Origin: Octopus bimaculoides
Lineage: Eukaryota
NCBI RefSeq assembly: GCF_001194135.2
Contig: NC_068988.1
Coordinates: 77,747,018 to 77,811,017 of the forward strand
Length of the DNA stretch: 64,000 nucleotides
Direction of reading: 5' to 3'
Every line of letters starts with the position of its first letter. The stretch's first letter is position 1. The translations under genes were made by a program, and so were the position numbers. Shown one piece after another: positions 2,538-34,031 of this stretch. The notes under the pieces are model-generated. The model was not told where the DNA came from and searched no databases. It saw only the letters and a program-made list of their open reading frames with translations.

Positions 2538-3476
2538 TTTTTTCCAAATGAGATAAAAAAAACCAAGGCTGTGAAAATTTTAGAACATTTATGAATAGAA
2601 GGTCTTACAGCTGTTTCCGGGATATTTTTTATTTCCCTTCATCAGAGACGGTGTGAGAAAATGGTTAAGCAATAGTTAATTTAGATAAGATATGAAATAG
2701 AGAGTGAAGTGGAGGAATGAAAATAGATGTGAGATATGCAGAGATATTGCATTTATAGATCCATTATTTAGGTAGAATGGTATACATATAAAATTTCAAT
2801 ACCTTGTGAGTAAATTCTTATAGTATTTAAAATTGGTCATTCCAAGTATAGAGTTTGTACATGGTGTTATTGAATCGAGGGTTTTATTTAAAGTGACTTA
2901 AAAGTTGGGAATGTATTTGTAAGGTCAAATGGAAAACAGGAAGAAAGGAATAAAGAAAAAAAGAAAATGAAAAGAAAAAGAAAAGCAAGGAGAGAGATAA
3001 TAAAGAGATGAAGAGAGGGGAAGTGTACCAGTTAGTGGTCAGTCAAGATGAATTGATAGACGGAATGGTGGGGGTGAGGGTGATAGAGAGAGAAAGATAT
3101 GAGAGTATAAAAAGATGATAGGGTAAAGAGTAAAGTGGTGTCAGATAAAGGAAGGGGGGTTACACAGAGAGAGAAGTATAATAGTGTAAAAAAAAAAAGG
3201 AGTGTCAGGTATGTAGTGATAGAGTCTAAGTGATGGGGCAGAAAGAGGTGGTAGGGGTAGTAATATGGTGGAATGAAGAATTTTGGAATATAGATTAGGT
3301 TGGTTGGACAAGTCAGTGCTTAGTAGTAGAAGAAAATATATATGTGAAGATGTATACAGATGTAAATATTAAACATGTATATATATATTTATACAGATAT
3401 TTACAGCTGTAAGACCTATTTATAAATGTTCTAAAATCTTCACAGCCTTAGTTTTTTTTATCTCATTCTGAAAAAA
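2538..3476 (-). mobile_element. Penelope-like 3' fragment flanked by ~75-bp inverted arms
   Basis: 2538-2614 is the reverse complement of 3403-3476. It contains an HHR motif and purine-rich filler like other PLE remnants in the window. Confidence 0.55.
2602..2649 (-). ncRNA. Minimal type I hammerhead ribozyme motif (PLE-type)
   Basis: Minus strand: GTCT-CTGATGA-A-GGGA..TCCC-G-GAAA-CAGCTG-TA-AGAC. Stem I is GTCT/AGAC, stem III is palindromic ACAGCTGT, and there is an A.G mismatch at the base of stem II. Confidence 0.7.
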
Positions 3477-14200: not shown

Positions 14201-14245
14201 GAGGGAGTGGTATTATGTATGTGTGTATGTATGTATGTATGTATG

Positions 14246-14290
<45 letters not shown>

Positions 14291-14384
14291 GTGTGTATGT
14301 GTATTATACATGTATATATATATATATATGTATATATATGCGCGTGTGTGTAGATATATATATATATATACATATATGTACATA

Positions 14385-14584
14385 TAGGGCTAAATAGTAG
14401 TAGCATTCTTCCCTTTCATAGGACTGTCACATCAAGTTGACAACATACCATCACTTTATCATGCTGTTACTGTATAAATCTCTGAGAGATTTAGAAATAT
14501 ATAATTTCTATTTTCAAAATCAGTGAATGTATTTCACTTGAAATATGTGTTTTCAAAGGTGAATAGGCATCAACAGCTAGCAAG
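14385..14584 (+). repeat. 343-bp unit, copy 1 (partial, up to the insertion site)
   Basis: Aligns to 19772-19971; starts abruptly in (AT)n and ends at CAGCTAGCAAG. Confidence 0.9.
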
Positions 14585-14824
14585 GCGATGCCCTTTCGTC
14601 TATGACATGGTGTCGTTTTCAGTTATTACCTGTGGTATGTGAGTTCATCTCCTGTTCTGTTATTGTGAAATTTTGTTATTGAAGATTTTATTGGGATTTG
14701 AACTGTTGTCCTGTGGAAAACTGTAATTTTCATCCTACAGGGTAGAAAATTTCTGTAAATTATTTATTGATTTGTGAATTTGTGAAGTAAATTTGTGAAA
14801 ATTTTTATGTTAACCAATGAAGTT

Positions 14825-16163
14825 ATGGACACTCAAGCAGCCGTTAGCTGTGCTACAGCAGCGGGAAGGGGTGTAAATAGCGACGTTGTGCAAGTCAAGG
14901 AAGTCAAGTTCGATGAAAGAAGACTTAAAAAAGCTAACGATCTAATTGCTAAAGAAGGAAACAGCCTGAGACTCCAAATGAAATATTGGAAGAAACAGCG
15001 AAAAAACAGTTGTTTATAGAACACTGTCAAATAGCAGCAAAAAAGTTGAATTAGCAACAATTGAAGAAATGGAGGAGTGCCTCAAGGAGGTGAAGCACCT
15101 TACCACGTACTACACCAGAGGCAAGAAGTATGGCACAGTGGAGGTACGGTTTGCAATTGAACAGGACGCAATAAAGTGCTCCACTGTGTCATTAAGGTCG
15201 GATGAGTGGGCACTACTGCCAACCTATTGTGGCAAACGTGCGGCCAGAATTAGGATTGGCAGAGTGCCTCCAGAAATTGATGAAATGTGGCTGGTGGTGG
15301 CAATTCTCTTCAACGCTGAGGAGGAAACCAATGTCCTGAAGGTCACGAGGACAACGGAGGTGAATTGTTTTGGATACAGTCTTGAGGTAATAGTCCAAAT
15401 TAACATCCCAGATCTGCATAAAATTGTGGATGAGATTGTGTTACCGGAGGACATCAAACTACAAGTGGTAGAGGAGGGAAGGCATCCCAACTGCTACCAG
15501 TGTGGGGTATGGGTCACATGCAAGCGAGGTGTCCCCACAAACAAGAAGTTGAACAGGAGCAGGAGGAGGTGGAGCAAGATGTGGTAGCACAAGGCCAGGT
15601 AAAGGAAGTAATGGAAGCAGCAGAAGCAAAACATCCAGTCGCAAAGAAAAAGTAATAGTGGGAGGAAAATGCATTATCACCTCCCAAAAGCCCACAGAAA
15701 AAGAGAAAAGGCAATTTGGAGGAGATGCAGATAGAAGGTGCAGAAGGAGCAAAAAAGAAAATTGTAGAAGAGAGAACAAACAAAAAAGAAAGCATGCAGA
15801 AAGGAAAAGAAGCAACAACGAGGAGTAGCAATAAGATGGACACACAAGTACCAGGAACAGTGGGAGAGATTGGAAATGGAAAGAGGAGGCGAAAAGAAGA
15901 AATTTGAGGAGGATGGTGGAATACAAGAAGAGTATAGAGATAGAGAAGAGAATTAGGAAGTTGAAAAATGTTATAAGAGTTAAGATAACGGGAAGTGAAT
16001 ATACAGAGCAGTTTTGCTGAAAAGTGATAGAGCGGATAAATTGAAAGAATTGTTCGGCGAGTGGATTGATTTAACGGCGTTGTGGTTTAAATGTGAGGTG
16101 TTGCCACCAGCGGTGGCATTTGAAGACATTGTGCAATACTTTGTCGATGAAAATAGTAACTAA
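14825..16163 (+). pseudogene. ORF1 of element A (gag-like; zinc knuckle, acidic/basic linker, extra C-terminal domain), frameshifted
   Basis: MDTQAAVS...KHLTTYYTRGKKYGTVEV...LLPTYCGKRAARIRIGRVPP...EGRHPNCYQCGV (CCHC knuckle broken by a frameshift)...KELFGE..LPPAVAFEDIVQYFVDENSN*. Confidence 0.8.
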
Positions 16164-16237
16164 AATTTGTAAAATTGAAATGCATTTTAAAAAAAAAAAC
16201 CATAAACTGTACACGAACATGAATTGCATAAACAGTT

Positions 16238-16645
16238 TTTAGTAGAAAGTGGGTTATACATCTTTAGATGTATACCTGACTTTCCTACTATAAAATTAGA
16301 ATATAACGGAACGCTGAACTCCAGACCATCAACTTAAACAACACTTTATTTAGGTGGTAAATATATACATCTTTATTTCTTGTTGTTACAGCTTCTGTGT
16401 ATATGAGCATAGTTGTTGGGACGTTGTTCTGTAGTTGTAAGCGAGCTGTCGAGCGTAAGTCCGAAAGATGTAGAGAGACAGCTTAACACGTAAAGAGACT
16501 GTCTCCAGGTTGGAGTATTAGAGACACTCTTGACACGTCCGTGCTCATGGTCGGCCGACCGTAAAAGAGAAAGATTAAAGCGGGAACGCTTGCTTGTTTA
16601 ATTCCACGCATGCGTGAGACTACGCATGCGCACGGCGTTACTACA
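16238..16645 (-). mobile_element. Solo LTR (Gypsy-like), 408 bp, 4-bp TSD AGTT
   Basis: Ends T(T)TAGTA...TACTACA (TG..CA inverted termini with one mutation); AGTT at 16234-16237 and 16646-16649; removing it restores alignment with the 3' UTR of element B; AATAAA on the minus strand. Confidence 0.8.
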
Positions 16646-16793
16646 AGTTAAATGACACTGTTTGCGTACGGGGCGCAAATAAGACATTTCATTTTTCTCA
16701 TTATATCGCTATATTCATATTCATTTGAATTTCGTTTTATGTACCCCACTGTATTGTGTTGTCTGTCTTTGTTTGTCCCTTCTTTCTAAGAGC

Positions 16794-17119
16794 TGTAGGG
16801 AAGTGGTTATACACCATTAGGTGTACACCGCTTCCGTACATTAAATTTCTGGAAGAAACAACGGAACGCAGATTCTGAACAACATAACAATATTTATTTA
16901 CAGTGGAATTCAGTTCACGCTTGGAGGGAATTCGGTAGCTCGTCGCCCTCGGTTACTGAGACGCCTCCTGAATGATTTCCGTGGTTATTTGTTATTTGTG
17001 AAGCTCTGGTGCTGACATGTGAGAGAGCTCTGTTGGACGTCTTGGCTCGACGGAGATCAGTCAACGAAGAGACTGAGAAAAGGCGCCAAAGCTGGGTGTC
17101 GAACTCTACGCATGCGCAT
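16794..17119 (-). mobile_element. Second LTR (related subfamily), runs into gap
   Basis: Begins TGTAGGGAAGTGGTTATACACC, similar to the LTR1 terminus; GCATGCGCAT motif; interrupts the 3' UTR after GAGC. Confidence 0.65.
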
Positions 17120-17387
17120 NNNNNNNNNNNNNNNNNNNNNNNNNNNNNNNNNNNNNNNNNNNNNNNNNNNNNNNNNNNNNNNNNNNNNNNNNNNNNNNNN
17201 NNNNNNNNNNNNNNNNNNNNNNNNNNNNNNNNNNNNNNNNNNNNNNNNNNNNNNNNNNNNNNNNNNNNNNNNNNNNNNNNNNNNNNNNNNNNNNNNNNNN
17301 NNNNNNNNNNNNNNNNNNNNNNNNNNNNNNNNNNNNNNNNNNNNNNNNNNNNNNNNNNNNNNNNNNNNNNNNNNNNNNNNNNNNNNN

Positions 17388-17738
17388 CCCCAGCTCTTAT
17401 ATTATTTATTAAATTCAGAAATACAGCAAACACGAGGGTCAACAGTAACAACAGATCAATAATTTATTCCTGGTTGGTGTAGAGCCGTTTGGTTCCCGGG
17501 TGAAAGGCATGCCGCTATAATACCAAAGGAAGCTTCGACCACATGTCGGGGTCGATGTTGTCAGAGAGCCTGGAAAACGTCCTGTCACGACGGTTGCTGG
17601 GTGAATAAGAGAGAACGCTATATCTTTATTCTCCACGTGTTGCATTGCGCATGCGTGCTCGGGTACTTCCGCTGACGGCAAATCCCTTGCACATGCGCAA
17701 TGGCACTTCCCAAGATGGCGGCCACACGCGCCACTACA
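17388..17738 (-). mobile_element. Third LTR (related subfamily), emerges from gap
   Basis: Ends GCCACTACA; contains GCGCATGCG and CAAGATGGCGGCC; its sequence differs from LTR2 at homologous positions. Confidence 0.65.
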
Positions 17739-17757
17739 CTTATAATAAAGAAAAAGC

Positions 17758-19619
17758 ACCTCTTTCGTCTGCAACATGTTGTTGTCTCCAATTATTACCT
17801 GTGGTGAGTTCGTTTCCTGTTCTGCTTATTGTAAATTTATGTTATTTTGAAGTGAAATACTTTAATTGAAATTGAACTGTTGTCCTTTGAAAAACAGTAA
17901 TTTTTGCCCTGCAGGGTGGAAAAATTTCTGTTAATTTTATTGTGAACTTTGATTTTTGCGAATATATTTTCTAGAAATTTTCTTGTCATTTGTGACAAGT
18001 GTAAAGCAACGAAGTAATGGAGACCCAACCAGCCGTCAGCTATACTGCAGCAACAGAAAGGGGTTTGAGTAACGATGTTTTGCAAGTGAAAGAAGTGAAG
18101 TTCAACGAAAAGAGATTGAAAAAGTCTAATGAGGAAGGAAACAGTCTGAGGCTGACCCTGCCAAAAGAAGCATTAGAGGAAACAGCTCAAAAACCTGTAG
18201 TGTATAGGATACTGTCAAACTCAAGTAAAAGGGTGGAAATAGCGACCGTTGAAGCAATGGAAGAATATCTAAAGGACATTAAACACCTAACGACATTCTA
18301 CACCAGAGGCAAGAAGTATGGCACAGTCGAGGTATGGTTTGCAACTGAACAGGACGCAATAAAGTGTTCCACAGTGCCATTGAGGTTGGAAGAGTGGGCA
18401 CTACTGCCAACCTACTGTGGCAAATGTGTGGCCAGAGTTAGGATTGGCAGAGCACCCCCATAAATCGATGAAGCGTAGCTGGTAGCAGCCATCCTCTTCA
18501 ACACGGAGGAGGAGACCAATGTGTTGAAGGTCACGAACAACAGAGGTAAACTGGTTTGGATACGGCCTTGAGGTGATGGTCCAAATCAGTTTACCGGACT
18601 TGCATAAAATTGCAGATGAAATTATGCTGCCAGAGGATGTTAAACTAAGAGTGGTAGTGGAGGGAAGACCTCCCATCTGCTACCACTGTGGAGTACGGGG
18701 ACACATGAAAGCAAGGTGTCCCCAAAAGCAAGAAGTAGAACAGGAGCAGGAAGAGGCGGTGGTGGAACAAGGAGTGGTAGCACTAAGCCAAGTAAGTGAA
18801 GAGATGGAAAACGTAGAAAAAAAAAATACTCAGTTGGAAAAAGAAAGAAGAAAAGAGATGAAAATGCATATTCACCACCAAAAAGCTCGCAAAAAGAAGA
18901 CAAAAGGCAACATAGAGGAGATACAAATTGAAAGAACAGAAATAACAAAAAAGAAAATTACAGAAGAAAAAACAAGTATGCAGAAAGGAAAAGGAAGCAA
19001 CAATTAAGAGTAAGAGAGAGATAGAGATGGTTGAGACACAAAAACCAGGAACGTCAGGAGAGAATAGAGACGGAAGAGGGGCAGGAGTACCGAAAGGAAA
19101 AAATGTGAGGACGTTGATAGAGTATAAAAAGAGCATAGAAATGGAGAAATGGATCACTAAAATGAAAAAAGTAATCAGAGTAAAATTATTGGGGCATGAG
19201 GATACCGAAGACAACAAGGCAGTTTTGCTAGAGAGAGAGAAAGTAGAAAGATTAAAAGAATTATTTGGTGAACAAATTGTAATAATGGTCCGATGTGACA
19301 AACTACCACCAGTGGTGCCATTTGACGACATAATAGAGTACATAGTAAATTGAAAGTAAGTGAAATTTTTAAAACTTAGAATAATATTTTAAAAGGAAAA
19401 CGTTGTAAAGAAGAATAATGAACTGTACGTGAATAATATGTTACTTAAACAGTTAAATGACACAGCCTGCATGAGGGGCACAGGTAAAATATTTTTCATT
19501 ATATCATTATATTCATAGTTTCATTCGATTTATGTTTTTTGTACCCCCATTGTATTGTGTTGTCTGTCTTTGCTTGTCCCTTCTTTGTATGAGCCAATGT
19601 GCTCGTAATAAAGAATAAT
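17758..19619 (+). mobile_element. ORF1-only (HAL1-like) element B
   Basis: 5' end CTCTTTCGTCT matches the start of A; ORF1; ~260-bp 3' UTR; AATAAA at 19607-19612; immediately followed by target sequence GCTAGCAAGCC. Confidence 0.85.
18017..19353 (+). pseudogene. ORF1 of element B (~440 aa reconstructed; 2 nonsense, 2 frameshift lesions)
   Basis: METQPAVSYT...RGKKYGTVEV...LLPTYCGK...VVVEGRPPICYHCGVRGHMKARCP (CCHC knuckle)...EYKKSIEMEK...LKELFGEQ...LPPVVPFDDIIEYIVN*. Confidence 0.85.
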
Positions 19620-19973
19620 GCTAGCAAGCCATGTTACTCCAGACTGATGATGAGCAATGGCTCTGTAACTAGTCTCTGGATGCTAGCTTTGCTGGGTGGA
19701 GGTGCTTATCTCCCCTTTGAAAACATAACGACACAAGAAATGTGTCAAGGCCAACAGGAAAAGGTGTTTCCTAGGGCTAAATAGCAGTAGCATTCTTCCC
19801 TTTCAAAGGACTGTCACATTAAGATGACAATATGTCATCACTTTATCATGCTGCTACTGTATGAATCTTTCTGAGAGATTTAGAAATGTATTATTTCTAT
19901 TTTCAAAATCAGTGAATGTATTTCACTTGAAATATGTTTTCAAATGTGAATAGGCATCCACAGCTAACAAGCC
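19620..19973 (+). repeat. 343-bp unit, copy 2 (complete, target site to target site); retrozyme-like monomer
   Basis: GCTAGCAAGCC at 19620 and GCTAACAAGCC at 19963; contains an HHR fold and many hairpins. Confidence 0.9.
19638..19680 (+). ncRNA. Minimal type I hammerhead ribozyme motif (GAAA>GTAA variant)
   Basis: TCCAGA-CTGATGA-T-GAGC-AATG-GCTC-T-GTAA-C-TA-G-TC-TCTGGA: 6-bp stem I, 4-bp stem II, palindromic ACTAGT stem III, GUC triplet (predicted cut after 19674). Confidence 0.7.
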
Positions 19974-20268
19974 GCGCCATTTTTCTTTGTGTCATTTTGA
20001 TTGCCACCATTGTTATGTGAGTTCGATTCTGGTTATTTGTTATTATAATTTGTTGATTACTGTATTGTCATTTCAACTATTGTCTGTGTGTTAACTGTAG
20101 TTTTCACCCTGCAAAGCCGAAAATACTGTTTAAAAAAAAATTTTGTCGTTGGAATATTGCTTTCAAAAATTTTTTTTTGTTTGCCCAGTACTGGGCGTTG
20201 TTTTTGTCAGTAATAACAAGCAACGAAAAATAGAATTTAACATTAATTCCAAGAAGGACTTCCCTGCA

Positions 20269-21652
20269 ATGGGAAATGACTGTACTACAAAGGATACCGA
20301 GGAAAAGACAAGTTTTTCTGCCATGGTTTGCAGCAAGGAGGTCGAGATGGAGTTTAAAATGGAACAAATGTACAATTTTAGAAACTTAATTTTAAAAAAG
20401 TGACGGCGAAACGAAGTTAATGCCGCCCCCAGAAACAGTAGCGGAAATAAATGCAAGAACAGTTGTATACAAAGTATACAGTGTAAAAAAAAAATGGAAG
20501 TAAAGAACGAGGTAGTTGAGACGTGCTTGGCACCAGTGTGGAATAAAATATGCTACGTTGGCTAAGGAATATGTAGTGCGACTGTGGAAGCACAGTTCCA
20601 ATCGGCCAACGTAGCTAAGGAAATATCTACAAGAACTCTAAAAAAACAACGAAATTATGCTGCTTCCCACTTATCTAGGTCACAGAATGGCAAAAATTGT
20701 AATTAAAGAAATCTTAGTAGGATACGAAGAGTTGTGGGTAGCGGCGGCAGTCATTTTTGATGCAGAGAATGAAGTAAATATACTGCAGATGACCAAAAAG
20801 ACACCGTAAACTGGAAAGGTCAAACGCTTCAATTGGTGGTTCAAGCCACCAATGAAACTCTTGAAAGTTTGCCTGACAGAATTTTTGTAGGGGAGGGACA
20901 TACAATTTGTGTGTTAGTAGAGGGACATAAGCCCCGATGCTTTAAGTGTGGACAGAAGGGCCACGTTCAGTCTACTTGTACCAAGAAAGAAAACACGTGG
21001 TGAAAGAAGCAGAAAAGCCAGAGAAAACAACAGGTAATGACAAAACAGAAAAAAAGTTAATAAGGGAAAAGCTCCGGAAAAGAACGAGGAGATGGAATTT
21101 ACCCAGGGGATACATAAAAAGAAAAAACAAATACCGTGGACTCTCCTCTCCAAACCAAAAAAATCTTACCATACAGACAACGTATAAAAAATTCTCTACC
21201 CCATCCCAGTGGTACTGTGTTTATTGGAACACAGTTTACCAAACCCCTCCCCATAAATCAGGAGGAAAAAGTAAAAAAAAAATGAAAAATTTATTTCATT
21301 CGACGCAAAAAATGAAAGAGCTTATAGATATATAAAAGCCCACTACCAAATAAAACTGTTAAGAAGAACGGTGGACAACAAGTCTGACGTTCGCTTTGCA
21401 AAGGTAGAGGAAGAGGCGTGGAAGGACAAGTCGTTACAGGAACGTTTACAGAACCAAGAGATAAAGGATGTAACACAGGATGTGGTGGAGGGCAAAGCGA
21501 TTTTTAGCCCAGCAGCCACACCAATCGAGAGCCCGGTGAAAAGCCCAGCGGCTACATCTACCAAAGGGAGAGAGGGGGAAGCAGGCAGACATAAACTGCC
21601 TTGCTCCCTATCGAAACTGTCAGTAGGTCCTTTTTTCTTCATCAATGTTTAA
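20269..21652 (+). pseudogene. ORF1 of element C (broken)
   Basis: LLPTYLGHRMAKIVIKEILVGYEELWVAAAVIFDAENEVNIL is homologous to A/B; knuckle VEGHKPRCFKCGQKGHVQSTC at ~20917-20979. Confidence 0.75.
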
Positions 21653-24600
21653 GCTAGGTTGTGTGAATGTGCATTAATGAGGTCGAAATGGAAACAGGTT
21701 TGTTTCCTGGACAACCTCAGGACACGTGGACTAGATGTGGCTATTGCAACCAAGTCCAAGATGAGCGGACCTCAAGCGTTCTCATCTCTTCTAAATGGTT
21801 ATGAGAAATTTATTTTTCCTGGCCGAGGAAGAGGAGGGGGCGTGGCAGTCTTTATTGGGGAGAGCTTGGACTTACAGGTAAGTACTGTCTTTCTGGACCC
21901 ACAAGGTAGGCTGATCATCCTTGATGTGACACATGTAAATAAGCAGTCCTTCAGGTTGATAGCTGGCTACGCTCCTAATGAGCATGGATAGTTGGGTTTT
22001 TTACAAGACCTGGAGCACGTCTAAAACAATAGTTCTAGTTGGTGACTTTAACACTATCCTCGATGCGTGGGTGGATAGTGTTGGCTCGACTGATAGTGAG
22101 GGGAATTCTGGCTTTAAGGGTCTACTAGAGAGCTTTAATCTAGTAGACCATTACCAACTCGATGAGCCAAGCATTCCACAGTGGACGTGGAGTTACAACG
22201 ATGGCTCACACAGATCATACTTAGGGTATTCGTTAGGAAAAGAGATAAGAAAACTTTTAGTTGTCCACAGTTTTGTATTGTGCCTTACACGGATCACAAA
22301 TTCGTGATGTGTGAGGTACATTTAGATAAATGTCATCGACAGGGACCTAGATGAACAAGTCTATTTTGACTTGTGAAGTCTTTCATACCCGTGTTAAGGA
22401 GTTAGTACAGAGGGCATTATGTGGCACCATCATTAATAATAGATGGTGGCATGCCCTTAAAAAGTCACCCATTTAGAGTCCATTAGATATAGCAATCAGC
22501 TAAGTTTAGATAGGACTAGAATAGAGGGCGATTTAGTTAAGAACCTAGACGAGGCTGTGGAATCTGGCTCTGCATCAAGAGTGCTGTTGGCGAGAACGGT
22601 CTTGTACCGTCACCTCAATTCCAAGCACAAAGGTTGCAGAGCTAAGCTACATACAGGGAAACAAGAAGGTATTAACGTTGCCAGATGGGCACGTCATGTG
22701 GAGTCAAAGAGGTAAGAATGCCTCTATAAAGTCTTTAACTGACAAACAGGGGCGCAAGATCTATGGACAGGAGGAGATGCAGAAAGTCTTTCACCAGCAT
22801 TTCGCCTGCTTGTTTGGGGAGGGCGGTTCGCTTGAGTGAGGGAAGGCCTTAAAGGACTTCCTAGCCAGTGGGCCATGACTCTTGGCATGTGAGGTGGAGT
22901 GCTGTGAAGGACTGATCACTCCTGCAGAGGTAAAAGAGGTGTTGACTGAGTGCACCGGGGAAAAGTCACCAGGGCTGGAAGGTCTGCCCTATGATTTTAT
23001 CGTTGTATGCCAGACTTGTTCAGGGATATACTGGCAGGTGTCTATACAAACTGGCAACAGAATGGGAGGATTCCCAGTTCTGTGAGCCGGAGAGTGATGA
23101 CACTGGTCCAGAAAGACCCAAGCAAGGGGGATAATATTTGCAATTATAGGCTCATAGCTATACTTAATGTAAAGTTAAAGATTTTGGCCAAGGTGTTAGC
23201 GAAAAGGTTGTTGGCTGTCATGGAGAAACTTGTAGGAAAGGCACAGACATATGCAATCCCAGACAGGTTGATCCAGGACAATCTTCACCTTATCCGCTAC
23301 ACCTTAGTCAGGGTTGGTAAATTATCTGGCAAAGGTGGGGCAATGGTCTATTTAGACGAAAGTAAAGCATTTGATAGGGTAGTCCATCGGTACCTGACAG
23401 CAGTTCTCAAAGCGGCTGGGCTGGACCCAGGCTTTCACAGATGGATCTCTGCTATGTACAGTGGCATCAAGTTCACAGTCCAGATAAACGGTTACCTGAT
23501 GGAGCCGTTTTCAATCAAGCGCTCAGTTCGTCAAGGGTGTCCCTTGTCTCTGCTCCTATACATGTTGGCTCTTGAGCCATTGCTGCTGAAGTTAGGGTAG
23601 TTGGGAGACAACCCTAATGAAATTAGATGCGGTAAGTGTGTTCATCGTCACCTTCATCGTGTTCAACGAAGCACAGCTACCTTGTGTAGAAGATGCTCTC
23701 AGAGGATATGAGGCAGTGGCAGGGGCAAAAGTTAACAACAACAAGTCCATCGGCTTGTGCCTTGACACCTGGAGGAGCAAGTCAATATTGTCCAGTGTCG
23801 TGGGTCACTGGACAGATGGTCCTGTTAAATTGCTTGGAGTTTGGTTTGGACCGGACTCCCAGACAGAGATGAATTTGGAGCGAGGTGGTAGACAAAGTGG
23901 AGGCACTAGTCTGGACTTGATCCGGAAGGGCTCTGTCCTTGAAAGGGAGGGCGGAGGTGGTGCAGGTGTTTATTGCATCTGTAATCACCTACCACCTGAC
24001 CCTTGTCCCTTGCCCCGATTCATGGCTAAACAAGTTGGAATGACTCCTTTTCCACTTTTTGCGGAAGGGAGGAAAGCCACTTGTGAGGCACTCTGTTTGC
24101 TGCCAGGAAACGTTAAAGGGTGGTTTAGGAATGCCTTGGCTAATGATGAACAGACATGTGTTGAGGCTGAGACATCTCTGGCACCACCTGGAAGGTGATA
24201 AGGTGCAGAGTCCACTAGCAGAGGGATTCTTCCCGCAACCGGCAAAAAGGAGTGCCGAGAGGCACTCTTGCTTATCCACAAGACGCGCAAGGCTGGCAGT
24301 GGGAATATCACCTCGGTGTTCTATAGAGGGTGGTAGAGTACAAAAATGATGATGTCCAAAGAGTGGCCCTGGGGTTCGACGAGAACCAACTCACCAACCT
24401 GTATCATAGGACTGTCAGGCCAGGATATTTAGATAATTATCAAAAATCCCTGGCTTGGTAGTGTTACAGGAATGCTTTACCTGTTTGCAAAAAGTTATCG
24501 AGGCATGGAATGTCAGTGCCACTGACATGTCCAAGATGTGGGCTGGACGATGAAACCATTCAGCACGCTTTTGTACAATGTCGGGAGCTGTCAAGCTTGA

Positions 24601-24929
24601 TAAGTTATGTAGAACTTGTGTTGCCACATCTGGGAGGAGTATGTCTATCGGCTGGATCTATAATAAAGATGGTACCGCCAGCTGGACTCTCAAAGGAAGG
24701 TGAGCCATGTTTTCTCTGTATGGTTGCACTATTGAAGGAGTGCGTATGGAGATCTAGATTGGAAGGTATTGTGACAGGGTCCTTCATCTCTGGCTCCAGG
24801 TTGCTAACTTACTTCAGGTACCATCTGAAGAGCAAGATGGGGTTGGAGAAGAAAACTCTGTTGCAGAGTGTGTACGAAAAACAATGGAAGGATGTGATGA
24901 GAAAGGTGGGTGTTAATAACCCAACTTAA
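21645..24929 (+). pseudogene. ORF2 of element C: APE endonuclease, reverse transcriptase and C-terminal Zn finger; many stops/frameshifts
   Basis: GGGVAVFI, GRLIILDV, LIAGYAPN, IVLVGDFN (APE); KSPGLEGLP, NYRLIAILN..KILAKVLAKRL, YLDESKAFDRV, SVRQGCPLSLLLY (RT); CPRCGLDDETIQHAFVQC (zf-RVT-like). ATG overlaps the ORF1 stop (ATGTTTAA). Confidence 0.92.
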
Positions 24930-25156
24930 TCATCAACAAAGGAAGAAATAGATAGTTGCTGGGCCTTACAGGCTGCCGGGTGCATTCCTTCTATTTAAAA
25001 AAAAAGTTTTAAAAACAAAGTCAAAATTAAATTGTATATAGCTGAAATTCAAATTTTTTAAATGTCCATATGAACTCATCATAACACTTTTATGTATTTG
25101 TAATGTCTTGTAATGTCTCCATCTGTGTAAGATTTTTATAAGCATAATAAAAAAAT

Positions 25157-25362
25157 CAGCTAGCAAGCCATGCTACTCCAGATTGATGATGAGTCTCTGG
25201 ATGCTGGCTTTGCTGGTTGGAGGTGCTTATCTCCCCTTTGAAAACACAAGGTCACAAGAAATGTGTCAAGGCCAACAGGAAACGGTGTTTCCTAGGGCTA
25301 AATAGCAGTAGCATTCTTCCCTTTCTTGGGACTGTCACATTAAGTTGACAACATACCATCGC

Positions 25363-25364
<2 letters not shown>
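25157..25364 (+). repeat. 343-bp unit, copy 3 (partial; HHR has an 18-nt deletion)
   Basis: Aligns to 19620-19845 apart from the missing CAATGGCTCTGTAACTAG; ends in (AT)n. Confidence 0.9.
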
Positions 25365-25428
<64 letters not shown>

Positions 25429-28400
25429 TACATAATACATGCATACATATATATATATTATCATTTAGCTTTTACTTGTTTCAGTCATAAGACTGCAATC
25501 ATCTGTAGACAGATAGGTGTAAACACACCAAGTCAGTGTTCAAAAAACACCCACCCAGATTGATTGATGCATTTATTTTGGAGTTGTTATCTTCTGTTTA
25601 GTGTGGAACATTGGAAAAGGAGGTGTTATGAACTGAGAACAAAAGACCAGGTCTCTCTGTATACATATATTTGTACATATATATGCATGTATGTGTATCT
25701 GTGTGTTTGTGTGCTAGTATATACACAGGCACATATGCACATATATAAAGACATGTTCACAGCTACAAGAACATAATTTGGCATCCCATGACATAATGTA
25801 AATGTTTCTGCGCCTGACTTACATTAGTGAAACACAGTTAAAACATAAATAGTATGGACTTTTCTAAATATTCTACATAAACAAGAATATATTTCTTTCC
25901 GCTACTTCATATATAATTCTATGTGGTATTCAAACCAACTACAGTGTGAGGTAGTTTAAAACTTATTCTCTTTTATGTTATTCAACTTCATTGTTGCGTT
26001 GCCTACAAAAATATCAAACATTTGAAATGAGGGGAAATGCTAATAATCTAAGAGAGATAGTTCTATAGAACAGAGTTTCTTAAATTTACAACCTCACGAA
26101 TATTTTCTTTCATTAATTTTCCTTTTAAAGTATGTTGTTTTCCTTTGTAGATTTTCTGCTGTTTCCAGCAATAGAAATTTGCACAAAGTCAGTCTCTCCT
26201 CACTTGGCACACTACCTAAAGTAATAGAAGTATAACTAATACAATCAACTACATTCTAGTAACTGCTATAATACTAGTAACAGTACCAGTAATAGTGTCA
26301 GTAATACTACTGGTAATAGTAAATCATAGTATTGATAATAGTACCTGCAATAGTACATGTAATAGTACCGTAAATAATATAAGGAAGAAATTTGCCATCA
26401 TTATGCTAGTATTTGGAACCTAGATTAAATTTTGATGAAAAGTTTTAATGTAGATTACTTTAAAACAAGATACTTATGTAGCAGGGATATTCAGCAACCA
26501 CTCAATGTTACAATTTGCTAGAATGTTGCCCATGTGTTCAACAAAAAATCTGAGCAATCACAACTTCTCATGGAATAGGCTCCAGTGACAATCTCATTTT
26601 TTGGTGTGCTTCCTTCTGAGCCTATCAACCAGTATAAATTTGATACACCATGACTGCTAGACAGAGAATTTTGGGATGCAACAGAGAGAGCATTGGTAAA
26701 TACTGTTGGAAATGACCAAAAGAAATAGCAAACAGTAGCTGACAACACCAAAGCAATGAACAGTTATAGGACAAACGACATCAGAAGTCAGTAGCTGGCA
26801 TGCAGCTAACCACCCTTTATCTACTGCTACAACTACACCAAGAACAATAACATTCAAAAATTTCTCAGCAACATTTGTTTTTGCGTATGAAAAGTATAAA
26901 ATTTTTTTCTCAAAAATCTCACCAGAGTTCAGTGTTTTTCTTCATACTCTTGTATCATAGCACCTGGGGTGGTCTTGGAAGGTTTATTACCAAAAGGGTT
27001 AACCCTTGTAAACCATATTTCTGCTGAAAATAATGTATAGTTAGTAAGCTAACTTTCTTATTAATCTCATATTTGCAATACAAATTTGCATAAAGTTTTG
27101 AGGGAAGGTTTTAATTTTAATAACTTTTAAAACAGAAATTTGCATTATAGAACCAGGGATGGGCTCAGGCAGGATGGTACCAAAAAAGTTACATACCTCA
27201 TTTACCTTTAAACACTTACTTTATTTACTAAATTTGTTTCATTAAAATTCTTAACAAATAGTAAAACCCATCTCTTACAAATCCCATTTTGTAAGGATGC
27301 TGTTGTCCTTGTTTACAAACACAAGTGGGTGGTGTTCCTTTCACAAGTTGAACAAACTGATAGGGGAATATTGAAGTCTCAGTCACCTTTACAATAAATT
27401 TCATGTTACTATCAATAGGGTCACACCAACAGTAAATGTTCAGGTTTTGTTCATAAATATGTTTGGAAATGATAATGTTATTTTGACATCGTTAATATGT
27501 ATAATAATCTGCTTGTTCATTCATCCGTTATACTTTAGTTGGTTAGAGATGTGGAGGTGGAGTAAAAGTGGGAGAGAGGGGTAGTGTGAGTAGATAAGAA
27601 AGAAGTGAGGAAGATGTAGAGAAAGATGTACAATAAGGCCAAATGCATCACATGGTTAGTTTAAGGGAGAGGTGAAGGGCAAGAGAAAAAGATGGTGAGA
27701 GAAAAGAGGGAGATAGAAGTTTAACAACGTGCAGTAGGGTAGGGAGGGAAAGGTAAAGAGAAAGAGATATGTTTAGGATACAATATTCAGCAGAGGAAAT
27801 GTGAGAGAGCAGACAGCCAAGCAGTGCATTATGCTGTCACACATGTGGTTAGTGGAAGAGAGAGGTGAAGAGAAAGAGAGAAATTATAAGACATGAAGAG
27901 GGTTAAAAAGTTTGTTGAAGTGGTAGAGAGGAAAATTTTTAAATAATGTCATATATTATTGACTGGAAGTGAAACAACTTAGCAAAATAGAAATAAAAAT
28001 GCAAATCATCCTTTCTTTCTTAAATAGCTTCTCTTAATCTTTATTGTTCTGTGGAATTTCACAGGTCCCACTAGTTATCATATATTTATAATAGAAAGAT
28101 TAAAGGATAAATGAATTGATGGATAGACAAACAGATAGACTGAGACAGATTGATCAATAGATTGACCAACAGATAGATAATAGATAGATCGATAGATAGG
28201 TAGATAGATAGATAGATAGAAAGAATGACAGACAGCTAAACAGACCAAGAGATAGATAGTGTCAGGTCACCAAGACATGTTTGTCATCAATATCTCTGTG
28301 TTGTCTACTCCCATATCAAGTACCTTCACTTGATTTCAAGTGTATTGTTTTATTAGTTTCCAACTTCTCAATGTTTTATTACATCACTTATATTGACACA

Positions 28401-29450
28401 GATTAATAGAGGATTTAATTAGTTACCCAACTTGTTCACCATGGGCTGTTTTGTTTTCTATTTTATACAAGTGTCAATGAATAAACAAGCTATAAACTAT
28501 CTTTTGTTTTTGAACTGACCTATAATCATCACTGGTGTCACAGTTGTCTTTGTTATTCTTCTTATTATTATTGCATTGTTGTTGCTTCTGCTGCTGTTTT
28601 TGTTGTTGTTGAGGTAGTGGTGGCAGTGGTGTATATGCTACAAAACATCACCATTACACGAAGGATTTCAGGCAAAGTTCTGTGTTTGATTTTTACTGAA
28701 AGATTTGTGAGCAACAGTTTCACTGGTTACAGCTTTGCAACAAGCCATGCACTGGTTACAATGTACATCTCGCAATGAAAGGGGATAAAGGAGTGTCTGT
28801 GTTACTTATGGTGAATTTACCACAATAAGATATTAGTCTGTGACACATCAATTGTCATTGAATACTCACCAATGAGTCAATCTCTTACCAATGCTTGCAT
28901 ACTGTCATCATCGTCATGTTCATCATCATTGTCATTTTTATCATTATAATCAACATTACACTCATCATAGTCATTTTCTTCATTGTTGTCATCGTTATCA
29001 TCATCATCATTACCATCATCATCATTACCATCATCATTATCTGGTTTACAATAATAGAGTGTAATAGAATGTAATTATTTCATGAGAATTCCATATGCTC
29101 CATCATATTCTCAAAAATTCAGCCTGAGACATGGTCATGCTACAAACACATAGTCCTAAGATTTATGCTCAAGGCTGTAATAGCCATAGAGTTTTACAGA
29201 TTTGGATTATGTAAAAGCAGAATGAAATATTTATTCAAAATTTCATATCTTTACAATGGTTTTGGTTGCAATAACAATGTTAGCCATGTCAGAAGAAGAT
29301 AATAATTTTAAAATAATAAAAAGCTGAAAAGAAAATCTCTAGTAAAATGGCAAGCATTGTTATTGGTAATGAAACAATTGGAAAGGTAAGAAATTTTAAA
29401 TAAAAATTTCTTTATTCTATTACATAATCTGGATATATCTATACATGTAC

Positions 29451-29489
<39 letters not shown>

Positions 29490-32887: not shown

Positions 32888-33335
32888 NNNNNNNNNNNNN
32901 NNNNNNNNNNNNNNNNNNNNNNNNNNNNNNNNNNNNNNNNNNNNNNNNNNNNNNNNNNNNNNNNNNNNNNNNNNNNNNNNNNNNNNNNNNNNNNNNNNNN
33001 NNNNNNNNNNNNNNNNNNNNNNNNNNNNNNNNNNNNNNNNNNNNNNNNNNNNNNNNNNNNNNNNNNNNNNNNNNNNNNNNNNNNNNNNNNNNNNNNNNNN
33101 NNNNNNNNNNNNNNNNNNNNNNNNNNNNNNNNNNNNNNNNNNNNNNNNNNNNNNNNNNNNNNNNNNNNNNNNNNNNNNNNNNNNNNNNNNNNNNNNNNNN
33201 NNNNNNNNNNNNNNNNNNNNNNNNNNNNNNNNNNNNNNNNNNNNNNNNNNNNNNNNNNNNNNNNNNNNNNNNNNNNNNNNNNNNNNNNNNNNNNNNNNNN
33301 NNNNNNNNNNNNNNNNNNNNNNNNNNNNNNNNNNN

Positions 33336-34031
33336 GATCAAGAGTATGAATACAGGGAAAGCCCCCGGCCCATCAGGAATCACTGCAGAGATGCTCAAAA
33401 TATCTGGCAGCGTCAGCTATAGCCTAGTCACCCGTATTGTTAACCAGGTGATACACAAAGGAGTCATACCCAATGACTGGTGTAGCAACACCATTGTCAA
33501 CTGCTACAAAGGTAAAGGTGACGCTTTAGACACAAACAATTACAGAGGTATCAAGTATTTGGACCAGGTAATGAAATTCATGGAGAGGGTCATAGCCCAA
33601 CTAATTAGGGAGAGAGTCAGTTTAGATGAGATGCAGTTTGGGTTTGTGCCAGGGAAAAGCACTACTGATGCTATATTTCTGGTAAGACAGCTGCAGGAGA
33701 AATACCTAGCCAAAGATAAACCTCTGTACCTGGCTTTCGTTGACCTGGAGAAAGCTTTTGACAGGGTCCCCCGCTCCCTTATCTGGTGGTCAATGAGGAA
33801 ACTAGGGATAGATGAGTGGTTAGTGAGAGCTGTGCAAGCCATGTACAGGGACGCTGTCAGTAAGGTGAGGATTGGCAACGAGTATAGGGAAGGATTCCGG
33901 GTAGAGGTAGGTGTCCACCAAGGTTCAGTCCTCAGCCCCCTCCTCTTTATCATAGTCCTCCAGACAATAACACAGGAATTCAAGATGGGATGCCCCTGGG
34001 AGCTCCTCTATGCTGATGACCTTGCCCTAAT
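33336..34031 (+). mobile_element. RTE-clade LINE reverse transcriptase fragment (open ~230 codons)
   Basis: GKAPGPSG, NNYRGIK, QFGFVPGKSTTDAIF, AFVDLEKAFDRVPR, GVHQGSVLSPLLF, LYADDL. Confidence 0.92.

Follow-up and report, generated by a model that had tools for sequence, protein, structure and literature searches.

Related L1-superfamily LINEs probably share a 13-bp insertion site in neighbouring units of a decayed, putatively retrozyme-like array in Octopus bimaculoides

Many Tx1 families of long interspersed elements (LINEs) insert at specific targets, which include a piggyBac derivative, mariner, Harbinger and long terminal repeat elements, satellites, small nuclear RNA (snRNA) genes and microsatellites. 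Examples are Tx1L in Tx1D, a piggyBac derivative of Xenopus, the crocodilian Tx1-Mar in Mariner-N4, Tx1-9_AMi in Harbinger, Keno in U2 snRNA genes, and Kibi and Koshi in microsatellites (PMC4494074). Because such target-specific families are published, the homing of one transposable element into another is an established Tx1 habit (PMC4494074). Here, we describe a locus of Octopus bimaculoides within a window of 64,000 nucleotides, the whole stretch of DNA that was analysed (NCBI RefSeq assembly GCF_001194135.2, contig NC_068988.1, positions 77,747,018 to 77,811,017 of the forward strand), where related L1-superfamily LINEs probably entered the same 13-bp site of neighbouring 343-bp units in a decayed, putatively retrozyme-like array. 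A preliminary description had presented the locus as a candidate new system, a parasite of a parasite. Novelty in kind has to be given up, since Tx1 families that target transposons and satellites are on record (PMC4494074), and the locus looks like a new target for a known LINE habit rather than a new kind of system. In the literature, we came across no report that connects Tx1 or other LINEs with a hammerhead-bearing target. At present, the case consists of one decayed locus in keeping with an established pattern.

The likeness to target-specific Tx1 LINEs extends to an L1-superfamily organization with an apurinic/apyrimidinic-type endonuclease (APE), a zinc knuckle in the first open reading frame (ORF1), insertion into one defined repeat sequence in one orientation, and short target-site duplications; the target of those LINEs is, moreover, often itself a mobile element. 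The present case differs in that the target is a 343-bp repeat with a hammerhead relic, that two events at one locus are available, and that the copies are dead. A second comparison is offered by R2 and R1 in ribosomal DNA, which are likewise site-specific LINEs in a tandem, potentially transcribed target, are oriented as the target transcript and co-transcribed with it, and have a self-cleaving RNA close to the junction (in R2, a ribozyme of the hepatitis delta virus type). However, in R2 the ribozyme is part of the element and cleaves at the 5' junction, whereas here the hammerhead relic is part of the target and is found 8-49 nt downstream of the 3' junction of the element, and R2 carries a restriction-like endonuclease in place of the APE of the LINEs described below.

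The array and its occupied target site

The array consists of three pieces of the unit, mutually about 91% identical, which are separated by the inserts and bounded by microsatellites (microsatellites were delimited by Tandem Repeats Finder, TRF, and by sequence; positions are those of the window):

14226-14386, no strand assigned: (TA)n/(GTAT)n microsatellite, left bound of the array
14385-14584, plus strand: unit copy 1, partial (unit positions 142-341), ending in the target site
14576-14584 (left) and 19620-19628 (right), plus strand: 9-bp duplication GCTAGCAAG of the A(+B) insertion; the left copy is the last 9 nt of unit copy 1
14585-16793, plus strand: element A, a LINE that is complete at the 5' end and has ORF1 alone (RRM-like region and decayed CCHC knuckle), frameshifted
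16794-17753, plus strand: stretch of 960 bp unlike B or C, holding the assembly gap 17120-17387
17754-19619, plus strand: element B, a complete 1.87-kb ORF1-only LINE derivative with 5' untranslated region (UTR), ORF1, 3' UTR and tail ..TAATAAAGAATAAT
19631-19973, plus strand: unit copy 2, full 343 bp, the sole complete unit
19961-19973 (left, the last 13 nt of unit copy 2) and 25157-25169 (right, CAGCTAGCAAGCC), plus strand: 13-bp duplication of the C insertion
19974-25156, plus strand: element C, a full-length L1-superfamily LINE of 5.2 kb, dead, with tail ..ATAATAAAAAAAT
25170-25367, plus strand: unit copy 3, partial (unit positions 1-216)
25366-25458, no strand assigned: (AT)n microsatellite, right bound of the array

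Excision of 14585-19628 and 19974-25169, that is, of the inserts together with one copy of each duplicated site, leaves a sequence whose self-alignment spans 420 nt with an offset of exactly 343, and the restored array of 743 bp holds 2.2 copies in register. The period was found by this self-alignment; TRF made no 343-bp call on the excised array. The about 2.2 tandem copies proposed in the preliminary description are therefore present, and so is the occupation of both copies of the site by different elements, with duplications of 9 bp around A and B and of 13 bp around C.

Up to two mismatches being allowed, CAGCTAGCAAGCC occurs four times on the plus strand (at 14574, 19618, 19961 and 25157), where 0.74 copies would be expected by chance and none of 100 shuffles reached four; both internal copies in the array are occupied by inserts. 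The two copies of the duplicated site around C differ at one base (G/A). Read directly, the insertion point is not A/T-rich, unlike the ordinary L1 endonuclease site. The two events have the same orientation and agree to within 2 nt in unit position at both nicks, and we estimate the chance that a second hit on the array would fall within 2 nt of the same unit position at about 5/343. The two reconstructed empty sites are mutually consistent and read ..CAGCTA[G/A]CAAGCC ATG[T/C]TACTCCAGA.., the reconstructed sequence being TGAATAGGCATCMACAGCTAGCAAGCCATGYTACTCCAGA. In uninterrupted form, as in a unit without a LINE, the site is defined as CAGCTAGCAAGCCATG, and copies of the A/B and C families with an intact 3' end are expected, if site-specific, to be followed by (CA)GCTAGCAAGCCATG.

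The shared position could also arise with no sequence specificity at all, if the array were a local hotspot of open, hairpin- or nick-prone DNA or were partly an artefact of assembly. The window does hold 12 assembly gaps with 4718 N (7.4%), one of them between A and B, together with abundant (TA)n, (TG)n and (AC)n microsatellites, and resembles a short-read scaffold from a cephalopod-like genome rich in repeats; the unit is also rich in hairpins, and AGCTAGCA has an inverted partner, TGCTAGCT, about 50 nt downstream. Against both stand the two nicks, which coincide as closely as estimated above, and the mutual relatedness of the inserted elements. The 3' junction of B, the full unit, C and the last unit, furthermore, lie on one gap-free stretch (17388-29489), and a false scaffold join would only turn the 5' junction of A into a third independent hit on the site. 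We give this explanation a slender chance.

Whether the 343 bp are a target or part of the inserts is best judged at the junctions. On the 5' side, the unit sequences preceding A and C agree at 90.6% over 190 bp, whereas A and C themselves agree at 64.3% over their first 190 bp; on the 3' side, the unit following B and that following C agree at 84% (91% without an 18-nt deletion), and the last 190 bp of B and C at 57%. The identity is thus about 91% on the unit side and 57-64% on the element side, with the break exactly at the junctions, which indicates that target and inserts have separate histories. Together with the restored periodicity, this break speaks for insertion into an array that was already in place. 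The alternative that a composite block of unit plus element was duplicated was considered and rejected, as the elements differ far more than the units.

The break also bears on an alternative that the preliminary description had itself named, namely that the 343 bp are simply the elements' own termini. In that case, the unit would be a repeated 5' monomer of the LINEs, comparable to mouse L1 promoters, the locus would be a head-to-tail array of LINEs, and the apparent duplications would reflect transcripts starting at unit position 331-333. It would fit that no empty unit was found in the window, the protein collection or the metagenome contigs, that each unit piece here adjoins a LINE end, that relatives in another genome form head-to-tail LINE clusters, and that the stretch ending at 17753 abuts B with no target sequence between them. 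However, a LINE monomer diverges with its element and precedes each full-length copy, whereas here the units stay about 91% alike beside elements at 57-64% and B is not preceded by a unit. Downstream of C, moreover, the unit piece stops at position 216 and gives way to (TA)n, no element body following it, and the array falls into perfect register once the inserts are removed. This origin of the unit appears decidedly unlikely, and insertion into an existing array is the reading that we pursue below.

The unit itself is tandem and non-coding, and its 343 bp lie within the approximately 150-400 bp expected of a metazoan non-LTR retrozyme. Its RNA is strongly self-paired, with a minimum free energy of -102.1 kcal/mol (z = -4.51) that none of 100 dinucleotide shuffles matched. 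A transfer RNA (tRNA) origin was rejected, the unit containing no tRNA-like gene. As a separate observation, a frame crossing the empty site is open in both unit copies, over 57 and 51 codons (19609-19783; 19952-19973 joined to 25170-25300), and the 18-nt deletion of copy 3 preserves it; having no homologue in the protein collection, this open frame is probably due to chance.

The hammerhead-like motif and the origin of the unit

Unit copy 2 contains a motif that was found with our own descriptor scan:

19639-19679, plus strand: hammerhead-like type-I motif

It reads CCAGA CUGAUGA U GAGC-AAUG-GCUC U GUAAC UA GUC UCUGG and would form a stem I of 5 bp, a helix II of 4 bp whose 5' end carries an unpaired base, and a helix III of 2 bp with the palindrome ACUAGU; the predicted cleavage point would follow 19674. 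The target site ends 8 nt before stem I (19639-19643), in agreement with the distance of about 8 nt in the preliminary description. Metazoan type-I hammerheads, which act as dimers, show the same architecture (PMC4209133; PMC7761336). Ten of the 11 fixed core bases match, the exception being A13, which is U (GUAAC where GAAAC is required). Two unit copies span the hammerhead region and copy 1 does not; in copy 3, the region reads TTGATGA and an 18-nt deletion has removed helices II and III. An intact catalytic core, as expected of a retrozyme hammerhead, is thus found in neither of the covering copies. The fold reported earlier is accordingly retained for its type-I architecture in copy 2, but with a substituted core there and a destroyed counterpart in copy 3, and on these sequence features we read the motif as a decayed ribozyme relic and not as a working ribozyme.

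Searches with Rfam returned no family in the unit and no hammerhead, whether in the whole window at the gathering threshold or in the units at E<=10. This silence is uninformative, because a control on a minimal hammerhead with a perfect core elsewhere in the window (2602-2649) was negative as well. That second motif, which came out of the same descriptor scan, lies on the minus strand, is of the minimal type I and reads GUCU CUGAUGA A GGGA..UCCC G GAAAC AGCU GUA AGAC (expectation 0.017 per window). It adjoins one arm of a 61-nt, 92% inverted repeat (2538-2598 and 3416-3476, arms 817 nt apart), the second arm of which has only the 3' part of the hammerhead motif, and its locus abuts the gap 1661-2438. 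The arrangement looks like the inverted, truncated form typical of Penelope-like elements.

Several properties of the unit recall metazoan non-LTR retrozymes and the minimal hammerheads of Penelope-like elements (PMC7761336, PMC4209133, bioRxiv 10.64898/2026.07.22.740005): non-coding units that are repeated in tandem, measure a few hundred bp and have a GC content of <50%; a hammerhead of type-I architecture whose helix III is weak and palindromic; highly self-paired RNA; (TA)n flanks; and the form of a partial-multimer array, as expected from rolling-circle cDNA. The differences are the mutated core in the single copy that has the motif, its deletion in the other, and an array of only 2.2 copies. 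Judged by these features, the unit is probably a decayed retrozyme-like or Penelope-derived repeat. A retrozyme-like origin with mobilization by Penelope would fit the (TA)n flanks and the partial-multimer form (bioRxiv 10.64898/2026.07.22.740005), (TA)n being a preferred target of some Penelope-like elements (PMC8557442).

It is possible, though in our view doubtful, that the LINEs do target this site and that the unit is nonetheless an ordinary dispersed or satellite repeat whose hammerhead-like motif arose by chance, with no ribozyme ancestry. The wrong core base, the presence of the motif in one copy and the silence of Rfam would all be expected of a chance motif, and 2.2 copies are too few for a consensus to be built. 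However, a motif of this kind is expected 0.07 times per 64-kb window by dinucleotide shuffling, and far less often per 343 bp; its architecture, including the palindromic helix III, fits the published metazoan type-I hammerheads; and Rfam is blind to the perfect-core hammerhead too, which itself indicates that such motifs are native to this genome.

One further feature of the region concerns the target core. The sequence AGCTAGCA (19622-19629) and its inverted partner TGCTAGCT (19681-19688), which lies just past stem I of the hammerhead, are placed by the predicted RNA fold within a helix closing the hammerhead domain; in copy 3 (25202-25209), the inverted partner is mutated to TGCTGGCT.

Weighing the shared-site reading and its possible course

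A number of observations weigh against two LINE insertions at one specific site of a retrozyme-like array. The evidence for specificity consists of two events (three or four elements) at one locus, and the link between A and B spans an assembly gap. Within the 64-kb window, no further unit copies occur, nor does any of the empty 343-bp units that the preliminary description had asked for; the two empty sites given above are reconstructions. Outside it, the 57-codon frame spanning the empty site had no match in the protein collection, and a unit 18-mer had 17 matches among metagenome contigs, all of 18-20 nt and attributable to chance. The inserts are assigned to the L1 superfamily and only tentatively to Tx1, the sole C-like piece recovered from Octopus sinensis is an internal fragment without ends, and clustering alone may be a family habit, as relatives with about 49% protein identity in another animal genome are clustered head to tail without an obvious common flank. 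The mutated core base, the loss of helices II and III in copy 3 and the Rfam negatives belong on the same side. Taken with the coincident nicks, the duplications and the break at the junctions, we nevertheless regard the shared-site reading as the probable one.

If it is right, a small dispersed array of 2.2 copies in a (TA)n microsatellite would have been present first, with the LINEs arriving later. Two related L1-superfamily lineages would have integrated by target-primed reverse transcription at CAGCTAGCAAGCC, in both available places. A sequence-specific APE would have cut the first strand either at the 5' edge of the 13-mer or 2 nt further in, and a second nick 9 or 13 nt downstream would have given rise to the duplications. 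One event would have delivered the full-length C; the other would have delivered A and B, arranged head to tail and flanked by one duplication. The join between A and B would most likely stem from a template jump, in which the reverse transcriptase (RT), having reached the 5' end of B RNA, moved on to the 3' end of A RNA. Decay of every copy would have followed. What is observed directly is how the locus is laid out, the two duplications, the fact that the elements are related and decayed, and the break in identity; targeting by a specific endonuclease, the template jump and the retrozyme-like nature of the unit are what we infer from them.

A bolder proposal would make this a LINE lineage of cephalopods that has specialized on a hammerhead-bearing retrozyme as a safe harbour, the ribozyme of the target trimming read-through transcripts. 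After trimming about 45 nt beyond the site, the transcripts would carry target sequence at the 3' end, and this could guide the next precise integration; the arrangement would then be a 3' mirror image of the 5' ribozyme processing of R2. We consider this very improbable. Should genome-wide data confirm the shared-site reading itself, the retrozyme-like or Penelope-derived repeat would be a new target class for Tx1-type LINEs, its defined 13-bp recognition sequence could serve to study how an APE endonuclease gains specificity, and three layers of dependence would coexist in a cephalopod genome, namely a Penelope-dependent repeat, LINEs nested in that repeat, and ORF1-only derivatives.

The inserted elements and their relatives

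A, B and C align from their first base, and a 3' terminal motif, ATAATAAA(G)AA, is common to B, C and the stretch ending at 17753. The ORF1 of C shares about 31-41% protein identity with that of A and B; on this evidence, A/B and C are related but distinct LINE lineages. By homology, the inserts belong to the L1 superfamily, and they are probably L1-Tx1 lineages; L1-Tx1 families have been annotated in Octopus vulgaris (PMC13282606). All three copies are broken and decayed. Within C, the following parts can be recognized:

from ~20269, plus strand: ORF1, with a CCHC knuckle near 20893-20997
21677-22461, plus strand: endonuclease (APE), by match to an intact relative
22843-24238, plus strand: RT, by match to an intact relative, and Pfam RVT_1 at 1.4e-18
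24468-24887, plus strand: C-terminal zinc-binding domain, by match to an intact relative

The zf-CCHC domain of C was detected with Pfam at 3.1e-5. An APE N-terminal to the RT is indicated by four tblastn pieces matching the Exo_endo_phos protein of the intact relative (joint E 8.6e-28); direct Pfam matches to this APE are weak (E 0.015-0.04, below the cut-off) because the copy has decayed. Homology to ORF2 comes in at least nine pieces spread over all three frames, with at least six frameshifts in C and many stops in all frames. The frameshifts and stops mean that C is dead and not the autonomous element that it had been taken for. Among solved structures, its RT is closer to human L1 ORF2p (1e-24) than to R2 (1e-17), and its best named homologue is from Octopus sinensis, with 78% identity over part of the RT. 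A search with the C-terminus of ORF2 returned one Logan protein, the contigs of which stop before the 3' end.

Three copies of a related LINE family, with about 49% protein identity to C, stand head to tail within 12 kb on contig ctg120036l (1494-12862) of ENA ERZ21867824. The spacers in this cluster measure about 55-70 bp, and two of the downstream flanks share GAGTCTA(A/G)TCAG. No clear common target and no hammerhead were found at the ends and flanks of these relatives, and the cluster may represent a habit of clustering or of targeting in another animal genome. In the window itself, other LINE RT fragments occur at 33337-34062, 43392-43823 and 47223-47875; none lies beside a 343-bp unit, and the first abuts the gap 32888-33335. 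They come from different families, as their protein identity to C is only about 31%.

A and B are 72% identical, with homology ending 25 nt before the end of B, and A carries about 400 extra bp (16199-16645) relative to B. B encodes in ORF1 a CCHC zinc knuckle (Pfam zf-CCHC 9.5e-5), and the frame is shifted; in A, the CCHC knuckle is mutated. The preliminary description had cast both as non-autonomous, ORF1-only partners of C. That they hold ORF1 only is correct, but both are broken, and an origin of B as a deletion derivative of C was rejected, ORF1 identity being about 31-41% at the protein level and the 3' UTRs not alignable. HAL1-type elements are ORF1-only LINE derivatives of mammalian L1. 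Like these, B (and A) keep a 5' UTR, ORF1 and a 3' end without ORF2 and would need the ORF2 protein of a partner; the difference lies in B not deriving from C by deletion, as its divergent ORF1 and 3' UTR show.

A module of A recurs in part in the 960-bp stretch that separates A from B, 16801-16872 resembling 16247-16317 and CTACGCATGCGCA being present both at 16623 (in A) and at 17109 (in the stretch). The stretch ends in ATAATAAAGAAAAA, which abuts the first base of B, and represents a long 3' region of A itself or, alternatively, a fourth related element. The flanks of its gap (17120-17387) show neither overlap nor alignment, and none of the reading frames with homology support extends over the gap, where the listed ORFs are runs of N; continuity between A and B is therefore putative. 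The main argument does not depend on their adjacency, because everything from the 3' junction of B to the last unit is free of gaps, and with a wrong scaffold join the 5' junction of A would count as a further independent hit on the same site. The region between A and B also holds a promoter-like cluster of motifs: the palindrome CGCATGCGC occurs three times (16623, 17109 and 17647), a AAGATGGCGGC motif lies near 17715, and TATAATAAAG stands just before the first base of B. The CGCATGCGC and AAGATGGCGGC motifs resemble NRF1 and YY1 binding sites.

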